From sequence record MN988522.1: a DNA stretch of 64,000 nt; one strand, 5' to 3'. The translations under genes were made by a program, and so were the position numbers. Every line of letters starts with the position of its first letter. Within the stretch, counting starts at the first letter, position 1. Below the pieces are notes generated by a model. It worked only from the letters and a program-made list of their open reading frames with translations. It did not search any database and was not told where the DNA came from. Shown piece after piece: positions 4,550-11,892 of the stretch.

Positions 4550-5238
4550 CTAAGATTCGACATATTTCTTTCGACGTATGGAATACTCTAGTAATTCCTA
4601 ATCCAGATTATGCCAGAGCACGATCCATGTACCTTGGTAAGGTATTCAATATGGTCTCGGAGGATGCTGCTAAGCTCTACTCGAGAGTTAAGAAATGGAT
4701 CGATGAACTTGCTGTTCAGACTGGTATGGGTCCTGATGCTGAGAGCAATGTACTCATGCTTCTGAATATGGCTGATCGTTATGCAGATCCTCAGGAGATC
4801 CTCATTAACTTTGAGAATCTCTTCTTCAAGTATCCTCCGATTATTCATCATGCAGTACGTGATGGACTTCGTGCACTGAAGCATCATGGATATACGTTCT
4901 CTGTCGCTAGTAATAGCAATTTCATATCTGGCAGAACGATGACTAAGTTCATTCATGCTGAATTTGGATGCATGGCTTATGAAGTTTATTCTGATCTCGA
5001 AGGCTATGCTAAGCCTCATCTCAGATTCTTTGAAGAAGTATTTCATGGTGCGAGGTTACAAGGTCTCGCAGACTACTCGAGTGAAATTCTACATGTCGGA
5101 GATCATGAGATCTGTGATGTGAAGGGTGCAAACGACTACGGATTTAAGTCATTACTTTTCACCAATCCTGAAGATATGTCCAAAGTTATTAAGAGAGTCC
5201 AGCAAAATGAACAACCACCAAGTGTACTATGCGCATAA
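4546..5238 (+). CDS. HAD-superfamily hydrolase
   Basis: Motif I SFDVWNTL, motif II ASNS, motif III KP, motif IV HVGD-x4-D. Confidence 0.8.
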   Translation: MTKIRHISFDVWNTLVIPNPDYARARSMYLGKVFNMVSEDAAKLYSRVKKWIDELAVQTGMGPDAESNVLMLLNMADRYADPQEILINFENLFFKYPPIIHHAVRDGLRALKHHGYTFSVASNSNFISGRTMTKFIHAEFGCMAYEVYSDLEGYAKPHLRFFEEVFHGARLQGLADYSSEILHVGDHEICDVKGANDYGFKSLLFTNPEDMSKVIKRVQQNEQPPSVLCA

Positions 5239-6061
5239 ATTTACTTCGATGGAAGATCTTCCATTCGACGCTGTAGACTATTGTGCTCTTAAGTTCGGAT
5301 CTGACGAGGTAGCTCGTCGATTTGGATATGAATTAGCTGAGAAGTTCTTCGAGGAGCATTCCAGTCGAATCGTGACGAATCATTGTGCAGTGATTCCATC
5401 TCCTTATAACTTCGTACCCAATGCAGCAACCATTCTATCGAAGCATTTCATTAATCGTCTGAATGAACTCATCGTTGAGGTCAATGGCGATTACGTTGAC
5501 TACGTTAGAATCCATCGTAAGGTCACATATACTGGTGACTTTGGTAAGCTCAATGAGGATGCTCGTCGAAAGCTTATTGGACAGGATTCATTCTATGTCA
5601 ACAAGCAGATTCTGAAGAATAAGCTCCTGATCTACTTGGACGACGTGATCATTACTGGTGCTCACGAAGATCGTCTCAAGGAAGTCATGGTCAAGAACAA
5701 GATGAAGAATGATTGTTTCTTCGTCTACTATGGTAAGTACTTCGGTACTGAACCTACGATCGAGAATAAGATCAACTTCGGAGGTATTGAAACTGTCGAA
5801 GATTATGTTAATTTTATTACCGATCGAGATCATCTCATTGTTCGTCCGATCAAGTACCTCCTAAGTCTACCTAATGAACAATTTAAGTTCTATCTCAACA
5901 AGACAAGTAGAACTCGTCTTGAGGAACTATTCCACTCATGCTTAGGTGAAGGGTACAATCGTATTCCTCAGTACCAGGAGAATTTTGTAGCTCTGAGAGA
6001 TCAGGTCAAGTATCTGTCTGAAGAGAATAGAGTATCTCGAATTTATGACAAGGTAGGTTAA
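5207..6061 (+). CDS. Type I phosphoribosyltransferase-like protein
   Basis: PRPP-binding motif LIYLDDVIITGAH; probable start ATG 5207 overlapping the HAD gene. Confidence 0.75.
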   Translation: MNNHQVYYAHKFTSMEDLPFDAVDYCALKFGSDEVARRFGYELAEKFFEEHSSRIVTNHCAVIPSPYNFVPNAATILSKHFINRLNELIVEVNGDYVDYVRIHRKVTYTGDFGKLNEDARRKLIGQDSFYVNKQILKNKLLIYLDDVIITGAHEDRLKEVMVKNKMKNDCFFVYYGKYFGTEPTIENKINFGGIETVEDYVNFITDRDHLIVRPIKYLLSLPNEQFKFYLNKTSRTRLEELFHSCLGEGYNRIPQYQENFVALRDQVKYLSEENRVSRIYDKVG

Positions 6062-6255
6062 TGATTAATAAAATTGAGATCGCTGAGCAGGAGTCAATAG
6101 AATTCAAACTTGAATTCGATCTTGCTGAAGTACGTAAATCTAACTATGTTATGGTCCCTATCAGTCTAGCTCGTAAGATTGATGCGTACTTCACAGAGGA
6201 GTTCAAGCGTAATCCTACGTTTGATCCTACGACTAACACCTTCAAGTAATCATCG

Positions 6256-6289
6256 GCCCTCATCTATGAAAGTAGGTGAGGGCTATTTT
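6256..6289 (+). terminator. Rho-independent terminator
   Basis: GCCCTCATCTAT-GAAA-GTAGGTGAGGGC followed by TATTTT. Confidence 0.75.
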
Positions 6290-6309
6290 CATGCATCATA
6301 GGTGGAACC

Positions 6310-6882
6310 ATGATCTTTAGTCTTAGTAATTCAGAATACTTCAGTCTTGCAGATGCAGTATGCACAGCTGAAGACTCTCAAGGTCGAGTACCTGTTGACA
6401 AGCACATTGTCAAGAAGCTCATTGCATATCTGGAAGCAGACAAGTACTTTAATCTCGGTACAGTATGTGTAGCATTACTTCCTGTTGAGGATGGTCTTCT
6501 ATTGATTCGTCGTAATCGTCAAGGTGACCCTGGATTCGGTATGCTAGCTCTACCTGGTGGATTCCAGAAGGGTAGTAAAGCTCAGAATATGTACGATGCT
6601 GTCGTCGAAGAGGTACTGGAAGAAACTCGTATCCAGACTAAGCGAGATGACTACATACTCATGGATGGCGATACGGATGAGTACGAACATAATGTTCTAT
6701 TCTTCAGGCATATCGGTCTGCCAGGTAAAGCAGAAGACTACATCAAAGATTTTGTACCTCTGGACGATGAGGTATCTGAACTTGTTCATATCAAGAAGAC
6801 TGTTGAGACAGCTTTCCCTATGCATACTCGAGCGATCGATAGATTCTTTCAGGACGAATTCGTTAAAGATTTCCTCCCTTGA
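6310..6882 (+). CDS. Nudix hydrolase (ADP-ribose pyrophosphatase-like)
   Basis: LLLIRR, ALPGGF and degenerate Nudix box AVVEEVLEETRI. Confidence 0.75.
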   Translation: MIFSLSNSEYFSLADAVCTAEDSQGRVPVDKHIVKKLIAYLEADKYFNLGTVCVALLPVEDGLLLIRRNRQGDPGFGMLALPGGFQKGSKAQNMYDAVVEEVLEETRIQTKRDDYILMDGDTDEYEHNVLFFRHIGLPGKAEDYIKDFVPLDDEVSELVHIKKTVETAFPMHTRAIDRFFQDEFVKDFLP

Positions 6883-7839: not shown

Positions 7840-8390
7840 TGACAGGTGAAGCAGGTCTCTTAGAGTCGTCGAGACCTCAGATGAATAAGGAATTCATCGA
7901 ATTCCTCGATGCTAATAGCAAGGTAGTATCTGCTCCAGCTTATTGGCATGCTCGAGGTATCGGATGCGAGTGGAATCTGCCATGCTTAGTCACAGGAGTG
8001 CATGATAAAAATGCTCTCATGGAGAACATCAGCGGATTCGTATCCACTCGTGAAGAAGGATATCGTGTCGTCAATATGTTCTTCGGTGGACGTGCTCGAC
8101 TTGATGTGCGTAAACATGAGCCTAACTATCTTCAAGTGAAGGTAGGAGTCAAGAAGGAACATAAAGATGTTCTTGAACGACTCATGAAGGCTAATATAAT
8201 CTCTGGCGGTATTCTTACCGTCAAGAATGTTATGTGGGCTATCGATCCTGAGAATCATCCAGGATATGATCCCATCAAGAAGCTCTTACAGACAGCGGAG
8301 TACTATAAATGATTTAGATCTGAGAAAACTCGTCAACTCAACCTCAGTGAAAATGTGAATAAATCTCAAGTGATTCAAGGAGAATCCAAA

Positions 8391-9185
8391 ATGAATAATC
8401 CTTTCAGCAAGAACATGATGGACCGTATGTTCAAGCAGGTCGACGGTGTCGTCTGGGACCTGATGTCTGGTTCGAAGATCGGTATCAAGACGAAGGAAGG
8501 TATCGCTACCGTCGATCTCAATCTCGAAGATGAGACTGCAGCTGTAGCTCCTGTCAAGACGACTACTCGTCGTAAGGCTGGTGCAGAACCTGTAGCTCCT
8601 CTCGCTATTCCGACTCCGTCTCCGATCATGGAAGCTCCGGATGCTCAGGTCTCGATCAATCTGTTCGATGACTTCGGTATGGCTCTGCCTGCATTCGCTC
8701 AGTCGACTCCTGTCGAGGCTATCGGTCTCGGTGATATGATCTGGAACTCGGCTCAGAATCGTGTCATGGGATGGGTCGTCAAGGTCAGTCCCAATCGTAA
8801 GAGCTTCAAGGTTCTCAAGACGGACGGTATGCGTAGCGAGTGGTCTCCTCCGAAGGTCAATGTACTCGGATTCGAGACTGGTACGATGGTCGTACGTTCT
8901 CTGATCAACATGCTTCCTGGTGGAGCTACTGGTCAGAATGGTCTGGAAGGCATGCAGTCGTCTCTCGGTCAGATGCTCATGATGTCGTCCATGATGGGTG
9001 GCAGTGAAGGTGACTCTGAGAACATGCTCAAGGACATCATGCCGATGATGCTCATGTCGCAGATGGGCATCGGTGGTGCTCAGGGTGGTATGGGTCAGAT
9101 GATGCAGACCATGATGATGATGAAAATGATGGGTGGTATGAATCGCGGTAGCGGTGGTACCAAGCGTAGTTTTTTCGACAACTAA
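8391..9185 (+). CDS. Hypothetical protein with Met/Gly-rich C-terminal low-complexity region
   Basis: AAGGAG RBS before ATG 8391; C-terminus MMMMKMMGGMNRG. Confidence 0.8.
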   Translation: MNNPFSKNMMDRMFKQVDGVVWDLMSGSKIGIKTKEGIATVDLNLEDETAAVAPVKTTTRRKAGAEPVAPLAIPTPSPIMEAPDAQVSINLFDDFGMALPAFAQSTPVEAIGLGDMIWNSAQNRVMGWVVKVSPNRKSFKVLKTDGMRSEWSPPKVNVLGFETGTMVVRSLINMLPGGATGQNGLEGMQSSLGQMLMMSSMMGGSEGDSENMLKDIMPMMLMSQMGIGGAQGGMGQMMQTMMMMKMMGGMNRGSGGTKRSFFDN

Positions 9186-9295
9186 GCTCTGATTCTGGAG
9201 AGGATGGATCTCGGATTAGATTCCGAGATCTGTCTTCGGAGCTTAGACATCTCCGTATCGTAGGAGAGACATATAGATCACGGTATGCACAGAAT

Positions 9296-9613
9296 GTGTA
9301 TCGTGATACTAAAGAGGATGATCCAGTCATCCTCGAGTGGGAAAAGACCAATCGTATGGATGGTTGTGCTCACAAAGTTCTCGTCTACGATCCAATCAAT
9401 GAACGAGGTACCCATGTAGGGTATGTCGACCGAAATCAAGCAGCTAGGATTGTTAGTGAGCTTGCCAAGTACAAATACACTGAGAAGACTCATCGTATTG
9501 TTGGTAAGATCACGAGGAACAATCCTGGTAAGTACAACGAAATCGAGATACTAGGACTCATCAGCACTACAGAGTCTGAACAGCATCTCAAAGATTATTA
9601 TAGAAGGAAATAA
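9296..9613 (+). CDS. HIRAN-domain protein; the open frame begins at 9170, so the true start is upstream of the GTG or reached by frameshift
   Basis: In-frame IVGETYR (upstream of the GTG), then VILEWEKTNRMDGCAHKV and HVGYVDRNQAARI, match the HIRAN pattern (V.G..Y...L..E..N..D..A..V...GY.P). Confidence 0.6.
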   Translation: MYRDTKEDDPVILEWEKTNRMDGCAHKVLVYDPINERGTHVGYVDRNQAARIVSELAKYKYTEKTHRIVGKITRNNPGKYNEIEILGLISTTESEQHLKDYYRRK

Positions 9614-9617
9614 CCAC

Positions 9618-10541
9618 ATGGGTGGCGGACGTTTTGATACTAATGCATATGCAAGCCTGTCGACTGCTCGTACAGTTCGTACTGACGGTACTCGTATGCA
9701 TCACACTGAAGTCTTCAAGGCTAAGGTCGTGGATAGCAAGTTCTCTCCACGAAATATCAAGCTTCGTGAGTCGGTTGACTCGGAGACATCTCCGAACTCT
9801 CGTCCGATCATCGTCGGTCTTGACTTCAGTGGATCGATGGGATCGATTGCAGGTGAGATGGCTAACAATCAGCTCGGTAAGCTGATGGAGAATGTCGTTG
9901 GTACGAAGGCAGTAGCTGATCCTCATCTGCTGTTCCTCGGTATTGATGACGTTCATGCATCATTCTCGTCTGAATCTCTCCAGGCTACTCAGTTCGAAGC
10001 TGATATTCGTATCGCTGAACAGCTGACTGAACTGAAGAATATCGGTCGAGGTGGAGGTAATGGATTCGAATCCTACAACCTCGCATGGTACTTCGCTGCA
10101 TACAAGACGAAGATCGACTCCTTCAAGAAGCGTGGTAAGAAGGGACTCCTCTTCACTATCGGCGATGAAGGTGTACCTGCAGATCTGAATGCATCTCATC
10201 TTGAGACTGTCTTCGGATCAGATGATCTTCCTGTTCTCAGCAACGATAGTCTCCTGAGCACTGTTCGTCAGGAATGGGATGTATTCCACATCATCGCAGA
10301 GGAAGGTGACTACTGCAGAGGTGGTAGCTCGCATGTCAGCAGGCAGTGGTATGGTCTGCTTGGCAATCGTGCTATTCTGATGAGCGACTATCGCTACGTC
10401 TCGGATATCATCGTTGCTACGATCGCTGTCAATGAAGGTCGTGATCCGGATGATCTCCTGTCCACGTACAAGAACGATGGATCTCGTGAAGTCATTGAGC
10501 GTGCACTCTACGGTATGCGAGATTTCGCTAAGTCTCTGTAA
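9618..10541 (+). CDS. von Willebrand factor A (vWA) domain protein
   Basis: MIDAS DFSGSMG, GGGGNGFESY and FTIGDE motifs. Confidence 0.75.
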   Translation: MGGGRFDTNAYASLSTARTVRTDGTRMHHTEVFKAKVVDSKFSPRNIKLRESVDSETSPNSRPIIVGLDFSGSMGSIAGEMANNQLGKLMENVVGTKAVADPHLLFLGIDDVHASFSSESLQATQFEADIRIAEQLTELKNIGRGGGNGFESYNLAWYFAAYKTKIDSFKKRGKKGLLFTIGDEGVPADLNASHLETVFGSDDLPVLSNDSLLSTVRQEWDVFHIIAEEGDYCRGGSSHVSRQWYGLLGNRAILMSDYRYVSDIIVATIAVNEGRDPDDLLSTYKNDGSREVIERALYGMRDFAKSL

Positions 10542-10641: not shown

Positions 10642-11892
10642 ATGAAGAATGCTCATATCGTTATTGGCGCACAATACGGAGATGAAGGCAAGGGTGCCAC
10701 TGTGAATCTCCTTGCTCAGAAATATCCAGATGCATTGAATGTCAGATTCAATGGTGGAGCTCAAGCAGGACATACTGTGACACTCGAGGATGGTCGTCGT
10801 CACGTATTCTCTCACTTTGGATCAGGTACTCTCCAAGGACTGGATACGTATTTCAACGAATCCTCCATCGTTAATCCTTGGAGATTCAAGGATGAGCATA
10901 CTGTAATCATGAGTGAATTCGGTCTGAGTCCTCTTGTTTTTGTACATGAGAATGCTCTGGTCACGTCGCCATACGATATGGCAATCAATCAACTCTGGGA
11001 GACTTGCCGTAGTGGAGATCGTCATGGATCCTGCGGTATGGGTATTTATGAGACAATCCTGAGATCTCGTAAGTCTGAATCTCTTGTGCGAGTACATGAA
11101 CTAGTTTATCATGTCTTTGAAGACATCAATGATCGATACAAAGAATATGCGTATCGTAGACTCCAAGATGTTAGGGATTTTCATCCTGATTGTGAAGAAT
11201 TCATTAAGGATACTGAGAAATTCATCGATAGTGAAGATGTTACTCGTCAGTTCTTTCTCGACTACTCATTCTTCATGTCGATGATTAATGTCGTTAAAGA
11301 CGATATTAATATCTACTCGCAGTACGATACTGTGATCTTCGAAGGAGCTCAAGGTCTCCAGCTCGATCAGAATTATGTTGAGTATCAAGGTAATCTGCCT
11401 CATGCTACTCCGTCCAATCCTGGACTTGGTAGTAAGTCACTCCATAATGCATTCGAGAAGTACGATCTCACTGAAGACAATATTCACGTGTACTATCTGA
11501 CGAGATTCTATCAGACTCGTCATGGTAATGGACCATTCGATCGTGAGGTTAATCCTGACGTTCTAGGTGACATTGTTGATCTCACCAACATCGACAATCC
11601 TCATCAAGGATCGATTCGATACGCTCCACTCAATGTCTTTAGTCTACTCGAAGCAGTAGAATTCGATCTTCAGTACATCGATAACTGCAGACCATATCTT
11701 GTGGTCACATGTGTTGACCAAGTTGTCAACGATGAAGTTGTCATCAAAGCACTGCATGATGACAGTCACGTTAAGATTCCATTCGAGGATTTGAAGATGA
11801 TCCTACGTGATAACTTTGAATTCATGTACGGTATCTTCTATTCTGACGGAAAATCTATGAAATACGAGGAACATCTTTATGTCGCAGCATGA
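10642..11892 (+). CDS. purA: Divergent adenylosuccinate synthetase-like enzyme (PurA fold)
   Basis: GAQYGDEGKG, RFNGGAQAGHT, FEGAQG, TRHGNGPF; the aspartate-binding loop is non-canonical. Confidence 0.8.
   Translation: MKNAHIVIGAQYGDEGKGATVNLLAQKYPDALNVRFNGGAQAGHTVTLEDGRRHVFSHFGSGTLQGLDTYFNESSIVNPWRFKDEHTVIMSEFGLSPLVFVHENALVTSPYDMAINQLWETCRSGDRHGSCGMGIYETILRSRKSESLVRVHELVYHVFEDINDRYKEYAYRRLQDVRDFHPDCEEFIKDTEKFIDSEDVTRQFFLDYSFFMSMINVVKDDINIYSQYDTVIFEGAQGLQLDQNYVEYQGNLPHATPSNPGLGSKSLHNAFEKYDLTEDNIHVYYLTRFYQTRHGNGPFDREVNPDVLGDIVDLTNIDNPHQGSIRYAPLNVFSLLEAVEFDLQYIDNCRPYLVVTCVDQVVNDEVVIKALHDDSHVKIPFEDLKMILRDNFEFMYGIFYSDGKSMKYEEHLYVAA

Follow-up and report, generated by a model that had tools for sequence, protein, structure and literature searches.

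At one gene junction in a 64,000-nucleotide stretch of sequence record MN988522.1 (hereafter the window, all positions being counted from its first letter), a gene for a Met/Gly-rich protein ends on a slippery heptamer, a predicted hairpin follows, and the overlapping -1 frame runs on into a HIRAN domain. The arrangement is analyzed here as a candidate programmed -1 ribosomal frameshift. The window is a 100% match to Rhizobium phage RHph_TM40 (MN988522; 207 kb; Kleczkowskaviridae, genus Cuauhnahuacvirus), and seven further Cuauhnahuacvirus phages are 97 to 100% identical to the region. GenBank presents the two parts as separate hypothetical genes, EVB94_016 (8391-9185) and EVB94_017 (9296-9613, GTG start, HIRAN-type gene ontology terms), and the record of RHph_TM40 carries no annotated ribosomal slippage feature. 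All 10 records of the genus (8 phages plus 2 RefSeq copies) likewise hold the HIRAN gene as a separate, N-terminally truncated open reading frame (ORF), as do those of the cultured phages RP13 and RDJL3, where the long isoform is again missing. The junction comprises the following features.

8391-9185, plus strand: Met/Gly-rich gene EVB94_016, 264 amino acids (aa), 0 frame, with a beta-rich N-terminal region, three Met-rich helices and a C-terminal Phe motif
9170-9176, plus strand: slippery heptamer T_TTT_TTC, encoding Phe-Phe at 0-frame codons 261-262, two codons ahead of the stop
9177-9181, plus strand: spacer of 5 nucleotides (nt) from heptamer to structure, according to the RNA fold
9182-9246, plus strand: putative stimulatory hairpin from the RNA fold, including the 0-frame stop at 9183-9185
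9176-9613, plus strand: -1-frame continuation of 145 codons plus stop, the frame being open from 9170, with a linker (about 9176-9247) and then HIRAN
9248-9610, plus strand: HIRAN-fold domain, from Pfam PF08797, an AlphaFold2 model and Foldseek
9296-9613, plus strand: GenBank coding sequence EVB94_017, GTG start, 105 aa, its start read here as an annotation artefact that truncates HIRAN
9618-10541, plus strand: downstream partner gene, 307 aa, matching phrog_2971

Slippery heptamer, hairpin and HIRAN domain in the window

The Met/Gly-rich gene ends AGT TTT TTC GAC AAC TAA, which places T_TTT_TTC (9170-9176) in X_XXY_YYZ register with the 0 frame; an earlier note on this DNA had named this heptamer, and it can be read directly from the sequence. 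A TAG at 9167-9169 closes the -1 frame upstream, so that the frame opens exactly on the first base of the heptamer and then stays open for 147 codons, to the stop at 9611-9613. Its earliest ATG, GTG or TTG is the annotated GTG at 9296, after 42 start-free codons; the same note's claim that the frame is open from 9170 to 9613 with none of these starts ahead of 9296 was borne out by the reading frames. Among ATG-initiated ORFs of at least 100 aa in the window, in-frame X_XXY_YYZ heptamers with Y = A or T occurred at 4 per 16,014 codons, and only the one at 9170-9176 opens a long -1 ORF.

The hairpin begins 5 nt past the heptamer, within the 5- to 9-nt spacing of downstream structures in the canonical -1 cassette; an in-register heptamer and an overlapping -1 ORF without a nearby start, two further elements of that cassette, are also present, and the slip site, frame relation and stimulator are kept in divergent homologs. 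An 11-bp outer stem (9182-9192 with 9236-9246, one G-U pair) leads over a 9-nt bulge on the 5' side (9193-9201) to a 14-bp inner stem (9202-9215 with 9222-9235) and a 6-nt loop (9216-9221). The earlier note had the distance and the outer stem right and listed an inner stem of 9 bp, which proved too short. The bulged hairpin totals 25 bp, with a minimum free energy (MFE) of -37.5 kcal/mol and a z score of -3.9 against dinucleotide shuffles (0 of 200 equally stable) and of -6.0 against synonymous-codon shuffles of the -1 frame. No Rfam family matched at 9000-9400, and no promoter-like site was found on the plus strand in 8200-9800. An intrinsic terminator was considered and rejected: the plus strand has no terminator-like site in 8200-9800, and the hairpin at 9182-9246 is not terminator-like because no T run follows it, the sequence after it being ACATCTCC.

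Two codons raised beforehand as possible starts of HIRAN, ATT 9215 and CTG 9230, are both in the HIRAN frame and both lie within the inner stem. A GGAG at 9197-9200 sits in the hairpin bulge, at a spacing of 14 nt to ATT 9215. The Shine-Dalgarno (SD)-like sequence GGAGAGGA at 9197-9206, partly in the bulge, is followed by a 0-frame ATG at 9204, whose ORF has only 19 codons.

The full -1 piece matched Pfam HIRAN (PF08797) with 30.9 bits over profile positions 7-77 (gathering cut-off, 24.7), and the annotated 105-aa product matched with 26.8 bits over positions 18-77, also above threshold. In an AlphaFold2 model of the 145-residue piece (mean predicted local distance difference test score [pLDDT], 75.6; predicted template modeling score, 0.74), strand 1 spans residues 25-29 and helix 1 spans residues 36-43; the annotated start falls at residue 41. 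As modeled, a protein begun at the annotated GTG (9296) lacks strand 1 and most of helix 1, which leaves the HIRAN domain truncated; both the Pfam match and the model agree here with what had been read from the sequence beforehand. The top 17 Foldseek matches of the piece in the PDB, at probabilities of 0.99 to 1.00, were all HIRAN domains (human HLTF or lp_0118). Pfam HIRAN was also matched at E <= 0.01 by 10 of 13 -1 pieces from relatives; of further relatives, RP13 gave 47.3 bits and RDJL3 41.1 bits. Direct searches with the HIRAN piece returned little: tblastn against 50,697 phage records matched only Cuauhnahuacvirus genomes, a word-indexed protein search matched the annotated protein alone, and a full HMMER scan gave 6 matches and a shallow alignment only.

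HIRAN and slippery codons across homologous loci

The comparison covered 128 loci: 38 from IMG/VR, 80 from metagenomes, 4 on contigs of metagenome-assembled genomes, 5 from cultured phages (of Vibrio, Ralstonia, Acinetobacter and Roseobacter) and the window. HIRAN was sought by searching the stop-to-stop ORFs of all loci with a hidden Markov model (HMM) made from the -1-frame pieces (alignment A3). Association was tabulated for 103 unique, sufficiently long loci, a heptamer being an in-frame X_XXY_YYZ within 30 nt of the stop; the statistics treat loci as independent and ignore phylogeny. The nearest relative outside the genus, P0002, is on a contig that ends short of the junction.

About 40 of about 100 unique loci bear a HIRAN ORF; without exception it lies in the -1 frame and overlaps the end of the Met-rich gene. 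A 0-frame HIRAN fusion was found in none of the 128 loci. Identity of the N-terminal domain among HIRAN-bearing loci ranges from 26 to 99% (median, 51%). Where the HMM detected HIRAN, a heptamer was present in 30 of 32 loci, versus 8 of 71 where it did not (Fisher p = 2e-16). Four of those eight loci later showed a HIRAN motif in the -1 ORF: Pfam gave 41 bits for RDJL3, 24.7 bits for L073 (at the cut-off of 24.7) and 21.5 bits for L129 (below it), and in L083, whose -1 ORF is cut by the contig end, the motif was recognized by eye only. Four more loci had a -1 ORF with a HIRAN motif and no full heptamer, namely L092 (Pfam, 28.3 bits) and, by eye only, L061 and two Acinetobacter phages. The revised counts are 34 loci with and 6 without a heptamer among those bearing HIRAN and 4 with and 59 without among those lacking it. 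On a neighbor-joining tree of 101 loci, HIRAN presence changes state at least 11 times, and the heptamer tracks HIRAN. Despite the rough tree and a statistic that ignores phylogeny, the direction and size of the association, as seen in these sequences, are hard to explain otherwise. The earlier note had pointed to conservation of the heptamer, the hairpin and the stop-free -1 frame as the check to make, and the family bears it out, with a heptamer in 34 of about 40 HIRAN loci and a 3' structure that is kept while its sequence differs. It had also named relatives with an ATG-started HIRAN gene and no heptamer as the finding that would speak against it; what came out is the opposite, HIRAN lying always in the -1 frame and overlapping. 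The A_AAA_AAG loci L022-24 were rejected as members, their -1 ORF not being HIRAN and having an ATG at codon 7.

The heptamers of the 34 HIRAN loci all lie at the homologous C-terminal Phe and are of four types, C_CCT_TTY, T_TTT_TTC, G_GGT_TTY and A_AAA_AAG. At the Pro-Phe motif of HIRAN-bearing loci the Pro codon is CCT in 28 of 28 cases (the full C_CCT_TTY in 24 of them), whereas CCT makes up 23% of the Pro codons elsewhere in the Met-rich genes of the same loci (binomial p ~2e-18, again with phylogeny ignored) and occurs at the Pro-Phe motif in 1 of 17 HIRAN-less loci. The Phe-Phe motif is written T_TTT_TTC in 6 of 7 HIRAN-bearing versus 3 of 29 HIRAN-less loci; the Gly-Phe motif, with HIRAN, is G_GGT_TTY in 3 of 3, and A_AAA_AAG serves in one HIRAN locus. 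Five of the six HIRAN loci without a full heptamer retain a U_UUY tetramer, and L061 retains a four-U run (CUU_UUC). C_CCU_UUY and U_UUU_UUC belong to the H_HH.U_UU.Y class, which is among the most efficient -1 motifs in Escherichia coli, and among tetramers only A_AAG does better than U_UUC and U_UUU (Sharma et al., PMC4066793). The codon counts argue that there is nucleotide-level selection on the slippery codons where HIRAN follows and that HIRAN-less relatives avoid them.

Over the 90 to 96 nt past the heptamer, predicted structure was more stable than in dinucleotide shuffles (mean z, -3.2; below -2 in 24 of 30 loci) and than in synonymous-codon shuffles that keep the -1 protein (mean z, -2.6; at most 5% of shuffles equally stable in 26 of 34 loci), versus a mean z of -1.05 for the equivalent stretch of HIRAN-less loci. 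Stem sequences vary from locus to locus. A two-helix model for a gapless clade of 8 sequences was 74.5% paired versus 33 to 45% in slid controls, with 9 pairs changed on both sides and a covariation score matched by 5 of 500 shuffles. In a clade of 7 sequences, RNAalifold predicted a three-way junction with an invariant 7-bp closing helix 9 nt past the heptamer and 8 compensatory pairs. By these folds, what is conserved of the 3' architecture is its general kind, and the details vary.

In 28 of the 32 loci in which the HMM found HIRAN, the match starts at model position 1 to 5 (mostly 2), a few codons from the heptamer. Amino acids of the -1 frame are conserved from the slip site on, including a Leu codon that overlaps the 0-frame stop, and the linker of the window can be aligned, starting at the first residues, with its -1 counterparts in L051 (45% identity) and L052, the window's nearest relatives outside the genus. 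At least 10 of the 34 loci lack any ATG, GTG or TTG ahead of the HIRAN core, and in many others the earliest ATG is a Met within the first HIRAN strand. Judged by this conservation, the linker between heptamer and HIRAN core is translated.

In Roseobacter phage RDJL3 (OK283305; L049, 3067-3885) and in L134, the Met-rich gene ends on G_GGT_TTT, and the -1 ORF, about 270 codons long, specifies a zinc finger of the DnaJ type (CxxCxGxG) and then HIRAN (Pfam, 41 bits); in RDJL3 the annotated ATG lies within the zinc finger, and 3' of the heptamer stands a hairpin of -43 kcal/mol. Ralstonia phage RP13 (LC554890, ORF194/ORF195; L047, 3076-3567) has G_GGT_TTC directly ahead of the stop and a -1 HIRAN of 47 bits. 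In the Acinetobacter phages vB_AbaM_3098 (L048, 3154-4152) and Ab1-TPeters (L050, 3112-3978), the last codons of the gene are CCT TTT TAA and a full heptamer is absent; from the gene end the -1 frame stays open over 280 to 330 codons and carries a VVGMRF/IVGMRY motif with no Pfam match, and 150 to 330 nt after the Met-rich gene are left unannotated in GenBank.

Proposed frameshift and rival explanations

We consider it very likely that a programmed -1 ribosomal frameshift at 9170-9176 appends HIRAN to the Met/Gly-rich protein, and on the comparative record the predicted frameshift is genuine and family-wide. From the anatomy of the junction, its conservation, the codon bias and the covariation, all observed, we infer the slip itself, its efficiency and its function. 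A ribosome on U_UUU_UUC would hold tRNA-Phe in both the P and the A site, with the 25-bp bulged hairpin at the mRNA entrance. Most ribosomes would stay in the 0 frame and stop at UAA 9183, releasing the 264-aa protein; a fraction, stimulated by the hairpin, would slip back one base, both tRNAs re-pairing on UUU UUU, and would read 145 further -1 codons into a product of about 407 aa composed of the Met/Gly-rich protein, the linker and a C-terminal HIRAN. The comparative evidence supports the two products, of 264 and about 400 aa, foreseen in the earlier note, the longer one coming to 262 + 145 = 407 aa by codon count. The ratio of the isoforms would be fixed by frameshift efficiency. Binding of 3' ends or single-stranded DNA (ssDNA) by the phage HIRAN is presumed from fold similarity alone; by analogy with the HIRAN of HLTF, the long isoform might tether the Met/Gly-rich protein and its neighbor of about 300 aa to DNA 3' ends or ssDNA.

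Several points weigh against this interpretation. For every member, the case is built on sequence comparison and RNA folding. The seven Cuauhnahuacvirus relatives, 95 to 100% identical at the junction, are uninformative there because they differ by only two substitutions. The tree is a rough one, and the large C_CCT_TTY groups consist in part of clades. Six HIRAN-bearing loci have no full heptamer and four HIRAN-less loci, L114 for example, have one; T_TTT_TTC in L114 and T_TTT_TTT in L064 stand at a Phe-Phe motif where the -1 frame closes after 4 and 26 codons, respectively, so that a heptamer can evidently arise by chance at such a motif. There is no single conserved fold, the structure being a bulged hairpin in some clades and a three-way junction in others; spacers, as they appear in the MFE folds, run from 0 to 13 nt; and RNAalifold found no consensus structure on MAFFT alignments of 17 and 12 heterogeneous junctions, which were non-structural and included some sequences cut too short. 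In RP13, an ATG and a plausible ribosome-binding site precede the HIRAN core, making independent initiation possible there besides frameshifting, and in the window the GGAG in the bulge together with the in-frame ATT 9215 is a possible weak start.

These last two points belong to the strongest rival, that HIRAN is made alone from a non-canonical or weak start (ATT 9215 or CTG 9230 in the window, an internal GTG, TTG or ATG elsewhere), with hairpin and heptamer either incidental or regulating coupling. The in-frame ATT and CTG, the accessibility of GGAG (9197-9200) in its bulge, the SD-like sequence and ATG 23 codons ahead of the HIRAN core in RP13, and a GTG or TTG in the linker of several loci would all fit it. 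We nevertheless regard it as unlikely: at least 10 of 34 loci offer no start ahead of the core, most other candidate starts have no SD, and those of the window are buried in the inner stem, with 14 nt between GGAG and ATT. Conservation of the -1 frame and the HMM matches begin at the heptamer, upstream of the candidate starts, and continue across the 0-frame stop. Independent initiation also leaves unexplained the restriction of fixed heptamer codons to loci with HIRAN downstream and the absence of HIRAN ORFs from the 0 and +1 frames. A related possibility, that ribosomes terminate at the 0-frame stop and, without using a canonical start, resume close by in the -1 frame, would suit the overlap of the 0-frame stop with the conserved -1 Leu codon (CTG A or CTA A), yet the CTA of the window is not an initiation codon, the codon bias at the heptamer is again unexplained, and in-frame conservation begins ahead of the stop; we give this termination-reinitiation hardly any credence.

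Recoding could instead lie in the transcript, the polymerase adding a U in the T run so that a minority mRNA yields the same fusion by ordinary translation. The window does have a run of six T (9170-9175), and transcriptional slippage is known on long homopolymers (reviewed in PMC5009743). Most relatives, however, have the same arrangement with three T only (C_CCT_TTC), which is far too short, and the conserved X_XXY_YYZ register matters to tRNA re-pairing and not to a polymerase. The conserved structure, moreover, is 3' of the slip site, not 5'. Penno et al. reportedly found in 2015 that stem-loop-mediated transcriptional slippage has its stem-loop 5' of the site. This explanation appears very unlikely. 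There might, finally, be no recoding at all, the junction being a decayed or mis-sequenced fusion gene (by mutation or homopolymer error) or a chance juxtaposition, with HIRAN untranslated or N-terminally truncated. Homopolymer runs are error-prone, and at 26.8 bits the product of the annotated GTG still passes the Pfam threshold; against this stand a sequence identical in seven independently sequenced phages, an arrangement found in about 40 loci down to 26% protein identity with differing heptamers and never in an in-frame version, and HIRAN ORFs that are intact and conserved at the amino acid level, which leave an error or accident extremely improbable. Each of the four rivals covers some of the facts, and none accounts for the frame-specific, HIRAN-linked codon bias.

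Literature searches (HIRAN with frameshift, the phage genus, PRFect and recoding reviews) turned up neither an account of this case nor proteomic or ribosome-profiling results for the trans-frame protein, and HIRAN is not mentioned in the recoding review of Atkins et al. (PMC5009743) or in the PRFect paper. According to PMC10885494, 2,397 of 2,476 annotated joined phage genes are tail assembly chaperones, in agreement with the statement in the earlier note that phage frameshifts are known mainly from these. What appears to be new is the gene family, the domain that is appended and how widely the arrangement is conserved; the mechanism itself is classical. We think it likely that this is a widespread, unrecognized recoding family, in which a protein of Rhizobium, Ralstonia, Roseobacter and probably Acinetobacter phages, and of many uncultured jumbo-phage contigs, is made as two isoforms and a HIRAN module, in some cases accompanied by a DnaJ-type zinc finger or by other segments, has been repeatedly gained or lost together with the slippery codons and a 3' structure.

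If so, this would be the first case of a conserved frameshift family outside the tail chaperone and capsid genes of phages, and would add a domain-appending frameshift in an accessory or DNA-metabolism gene family to those considered in recoding. It would also offer a natural series of at least four heptamer types (plus U_UUY tetramers) and several stimulator architectures at one homologous site. For annotation, the long isoform would be missing from the records, and dozens of metagenomic genomes would be affected alike. A fixed ratio of HIRAN-tagged to untagged protein would suggest an assembly with DNA ends engaged by some of its subunits only, and the family would provide a handle on an abundant, uncharacterized phage protein pair, the Met/Gly-rich protein and phrog_2971.

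Gene setting and comparison with known frameshift systems

The 264-aa Met/Gly-rich protein has at least 361 homologs at E < 0.001 and no sequence match in Pfam, PHROG, NCBIfam or the PDB. Conserved across the family are an N-terminal region and a C-terminal Phe motif (Pro-Phe, Phe-Phe or Gly-Phe), and the tail is Met/Gly-rich. The AlphaFold2 model of the 264-aa protein (pLDDT, 70) shows beta-rich small barrels and then three Met-rich helices, for which Foldseek found nothing in the PDB at E < 0.2 and only weak similarities to small beta-barrels (Tudor-, SH3- or KOW-like). Two homologs, P0044 and P0112, carry an N-terminal topoisomerase-type zinc ribbon (PF01396, a domain annotated as ssDNA binding), which may be a second, independent link to DNA binding or else a mis-called start or gene fusion.

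A phrog_2971 homolog lies downstream of the Met-rich gene in 66 of the 79 loci that have enough downstream sequence, with or without HIRAN. The protein in the window (9618-10541) has a DxSxS at residues 69-73, vWA/MIDAS-like by eye only, and no sequence match in Pfam, NCBIfam or the PDB. Neighboring genes in the window are hypothetical, NAD-salvage-like and PurA-like, and the window holds no tRNA genes. Just upstream, at 5207-6882, annotated phosphoribosyltransferase-like and NMN (nicotinamide mononucleotide) adenylyltransferase/Nudix genes form an NAD-salvage-like cluster. A PurA-like adenylosuccinate synthase at 10642-11892 scores 101 bits against an NCBIfam cut-off of 402 (PurZ model, 37.7 against 300), and a PurA-like gene also lies 3' of the Met-rich/phrog_2971 pair in Vibrio phage phiKT1024. 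The order Met-rich, phrog_2971, PurA-like suggests a conserved module.

The phage domain resembles the HIRAN of human HLTF and lp_0118 (PDB 4s0n, 4xzg and 3k2y) at a Foldseek probability of 1.00 and a TM score of 0.73 to 0.76 normalized to 3k2y, with only 16 to 20% sequence identity. In HLTF, HIRAN is the N-terminal domain of an SNF2 helicase, whereas the phage HIRAN is C-terminal and would be reached by recoding.

Among frameshift systems, the lambda G/GT tail assembly chaperone is likewise a phage pair with a -1 slip near the first ORF's stop and a C-terminally extended minor isoform; Xu, Hendrix and Duda are said to have reported in 2004 that the G/GT-type frameshift is kept across very divergent phages by position and not by sequence. 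The HIRAN locus differs in lying among nucleotide and NAD metabolism and hypothetical genes, not tail morphogenesis genes, and in its strong 3' structure. Identity as a G/GT chaperone was rejected: the neighbors are not tail tube or tape measure genes, and no PHROG or Pfam chaperone model matched. In the phage T7 capsid gene 10A/10B, a -1 shift at a U-rich site a few codons before the stop puts a C-terminal extension on a fraction of the molecules. The U-rich site near the stop and the partial extension are shared with the present locus, although in T7 the protein is structural and the extension short and without a recognizable domain.

E. coli dnaX (tau/gamma) combines a heptamer and a 3' hairpin to give two products with a common N terminus in a DNA-metabolism setting, as here. 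There, however, the shift ends translation almost at once and gives the shorter product, whereas the phage shift would add 145 residues; and dnaX uses an upstream SD-like stimulator, whereas the phage locus has no GGAG, GAGG or AGGA in the 20 nt upstream (9150-9169). A dnaX-type frameshift was rejected on these grounds, the absence of an SD-like stimulator in 9150-9169 and a shifted product 143 residues longer than the 0-frame product. The OrfA/OrfAB pair of the IS3 family of insertion sequences (IS911 and IS3) shares an X_XXY_YYZ -1 slip near the end of the upstream ORF, stimulation by a 3' structure, the appending of a whole functional domain and a fixed ratio between the short and the long product. 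Insertion sequences use U_UUU_UUC among other heptamers (PMC4066793). Unlike the IS3-family elements, the locus described here is a phage locus without a transposase or mobile element, the domain appended is HIRAN, and the dominant heptamer is C_CCU_UUY, not A_AAA_AAG.

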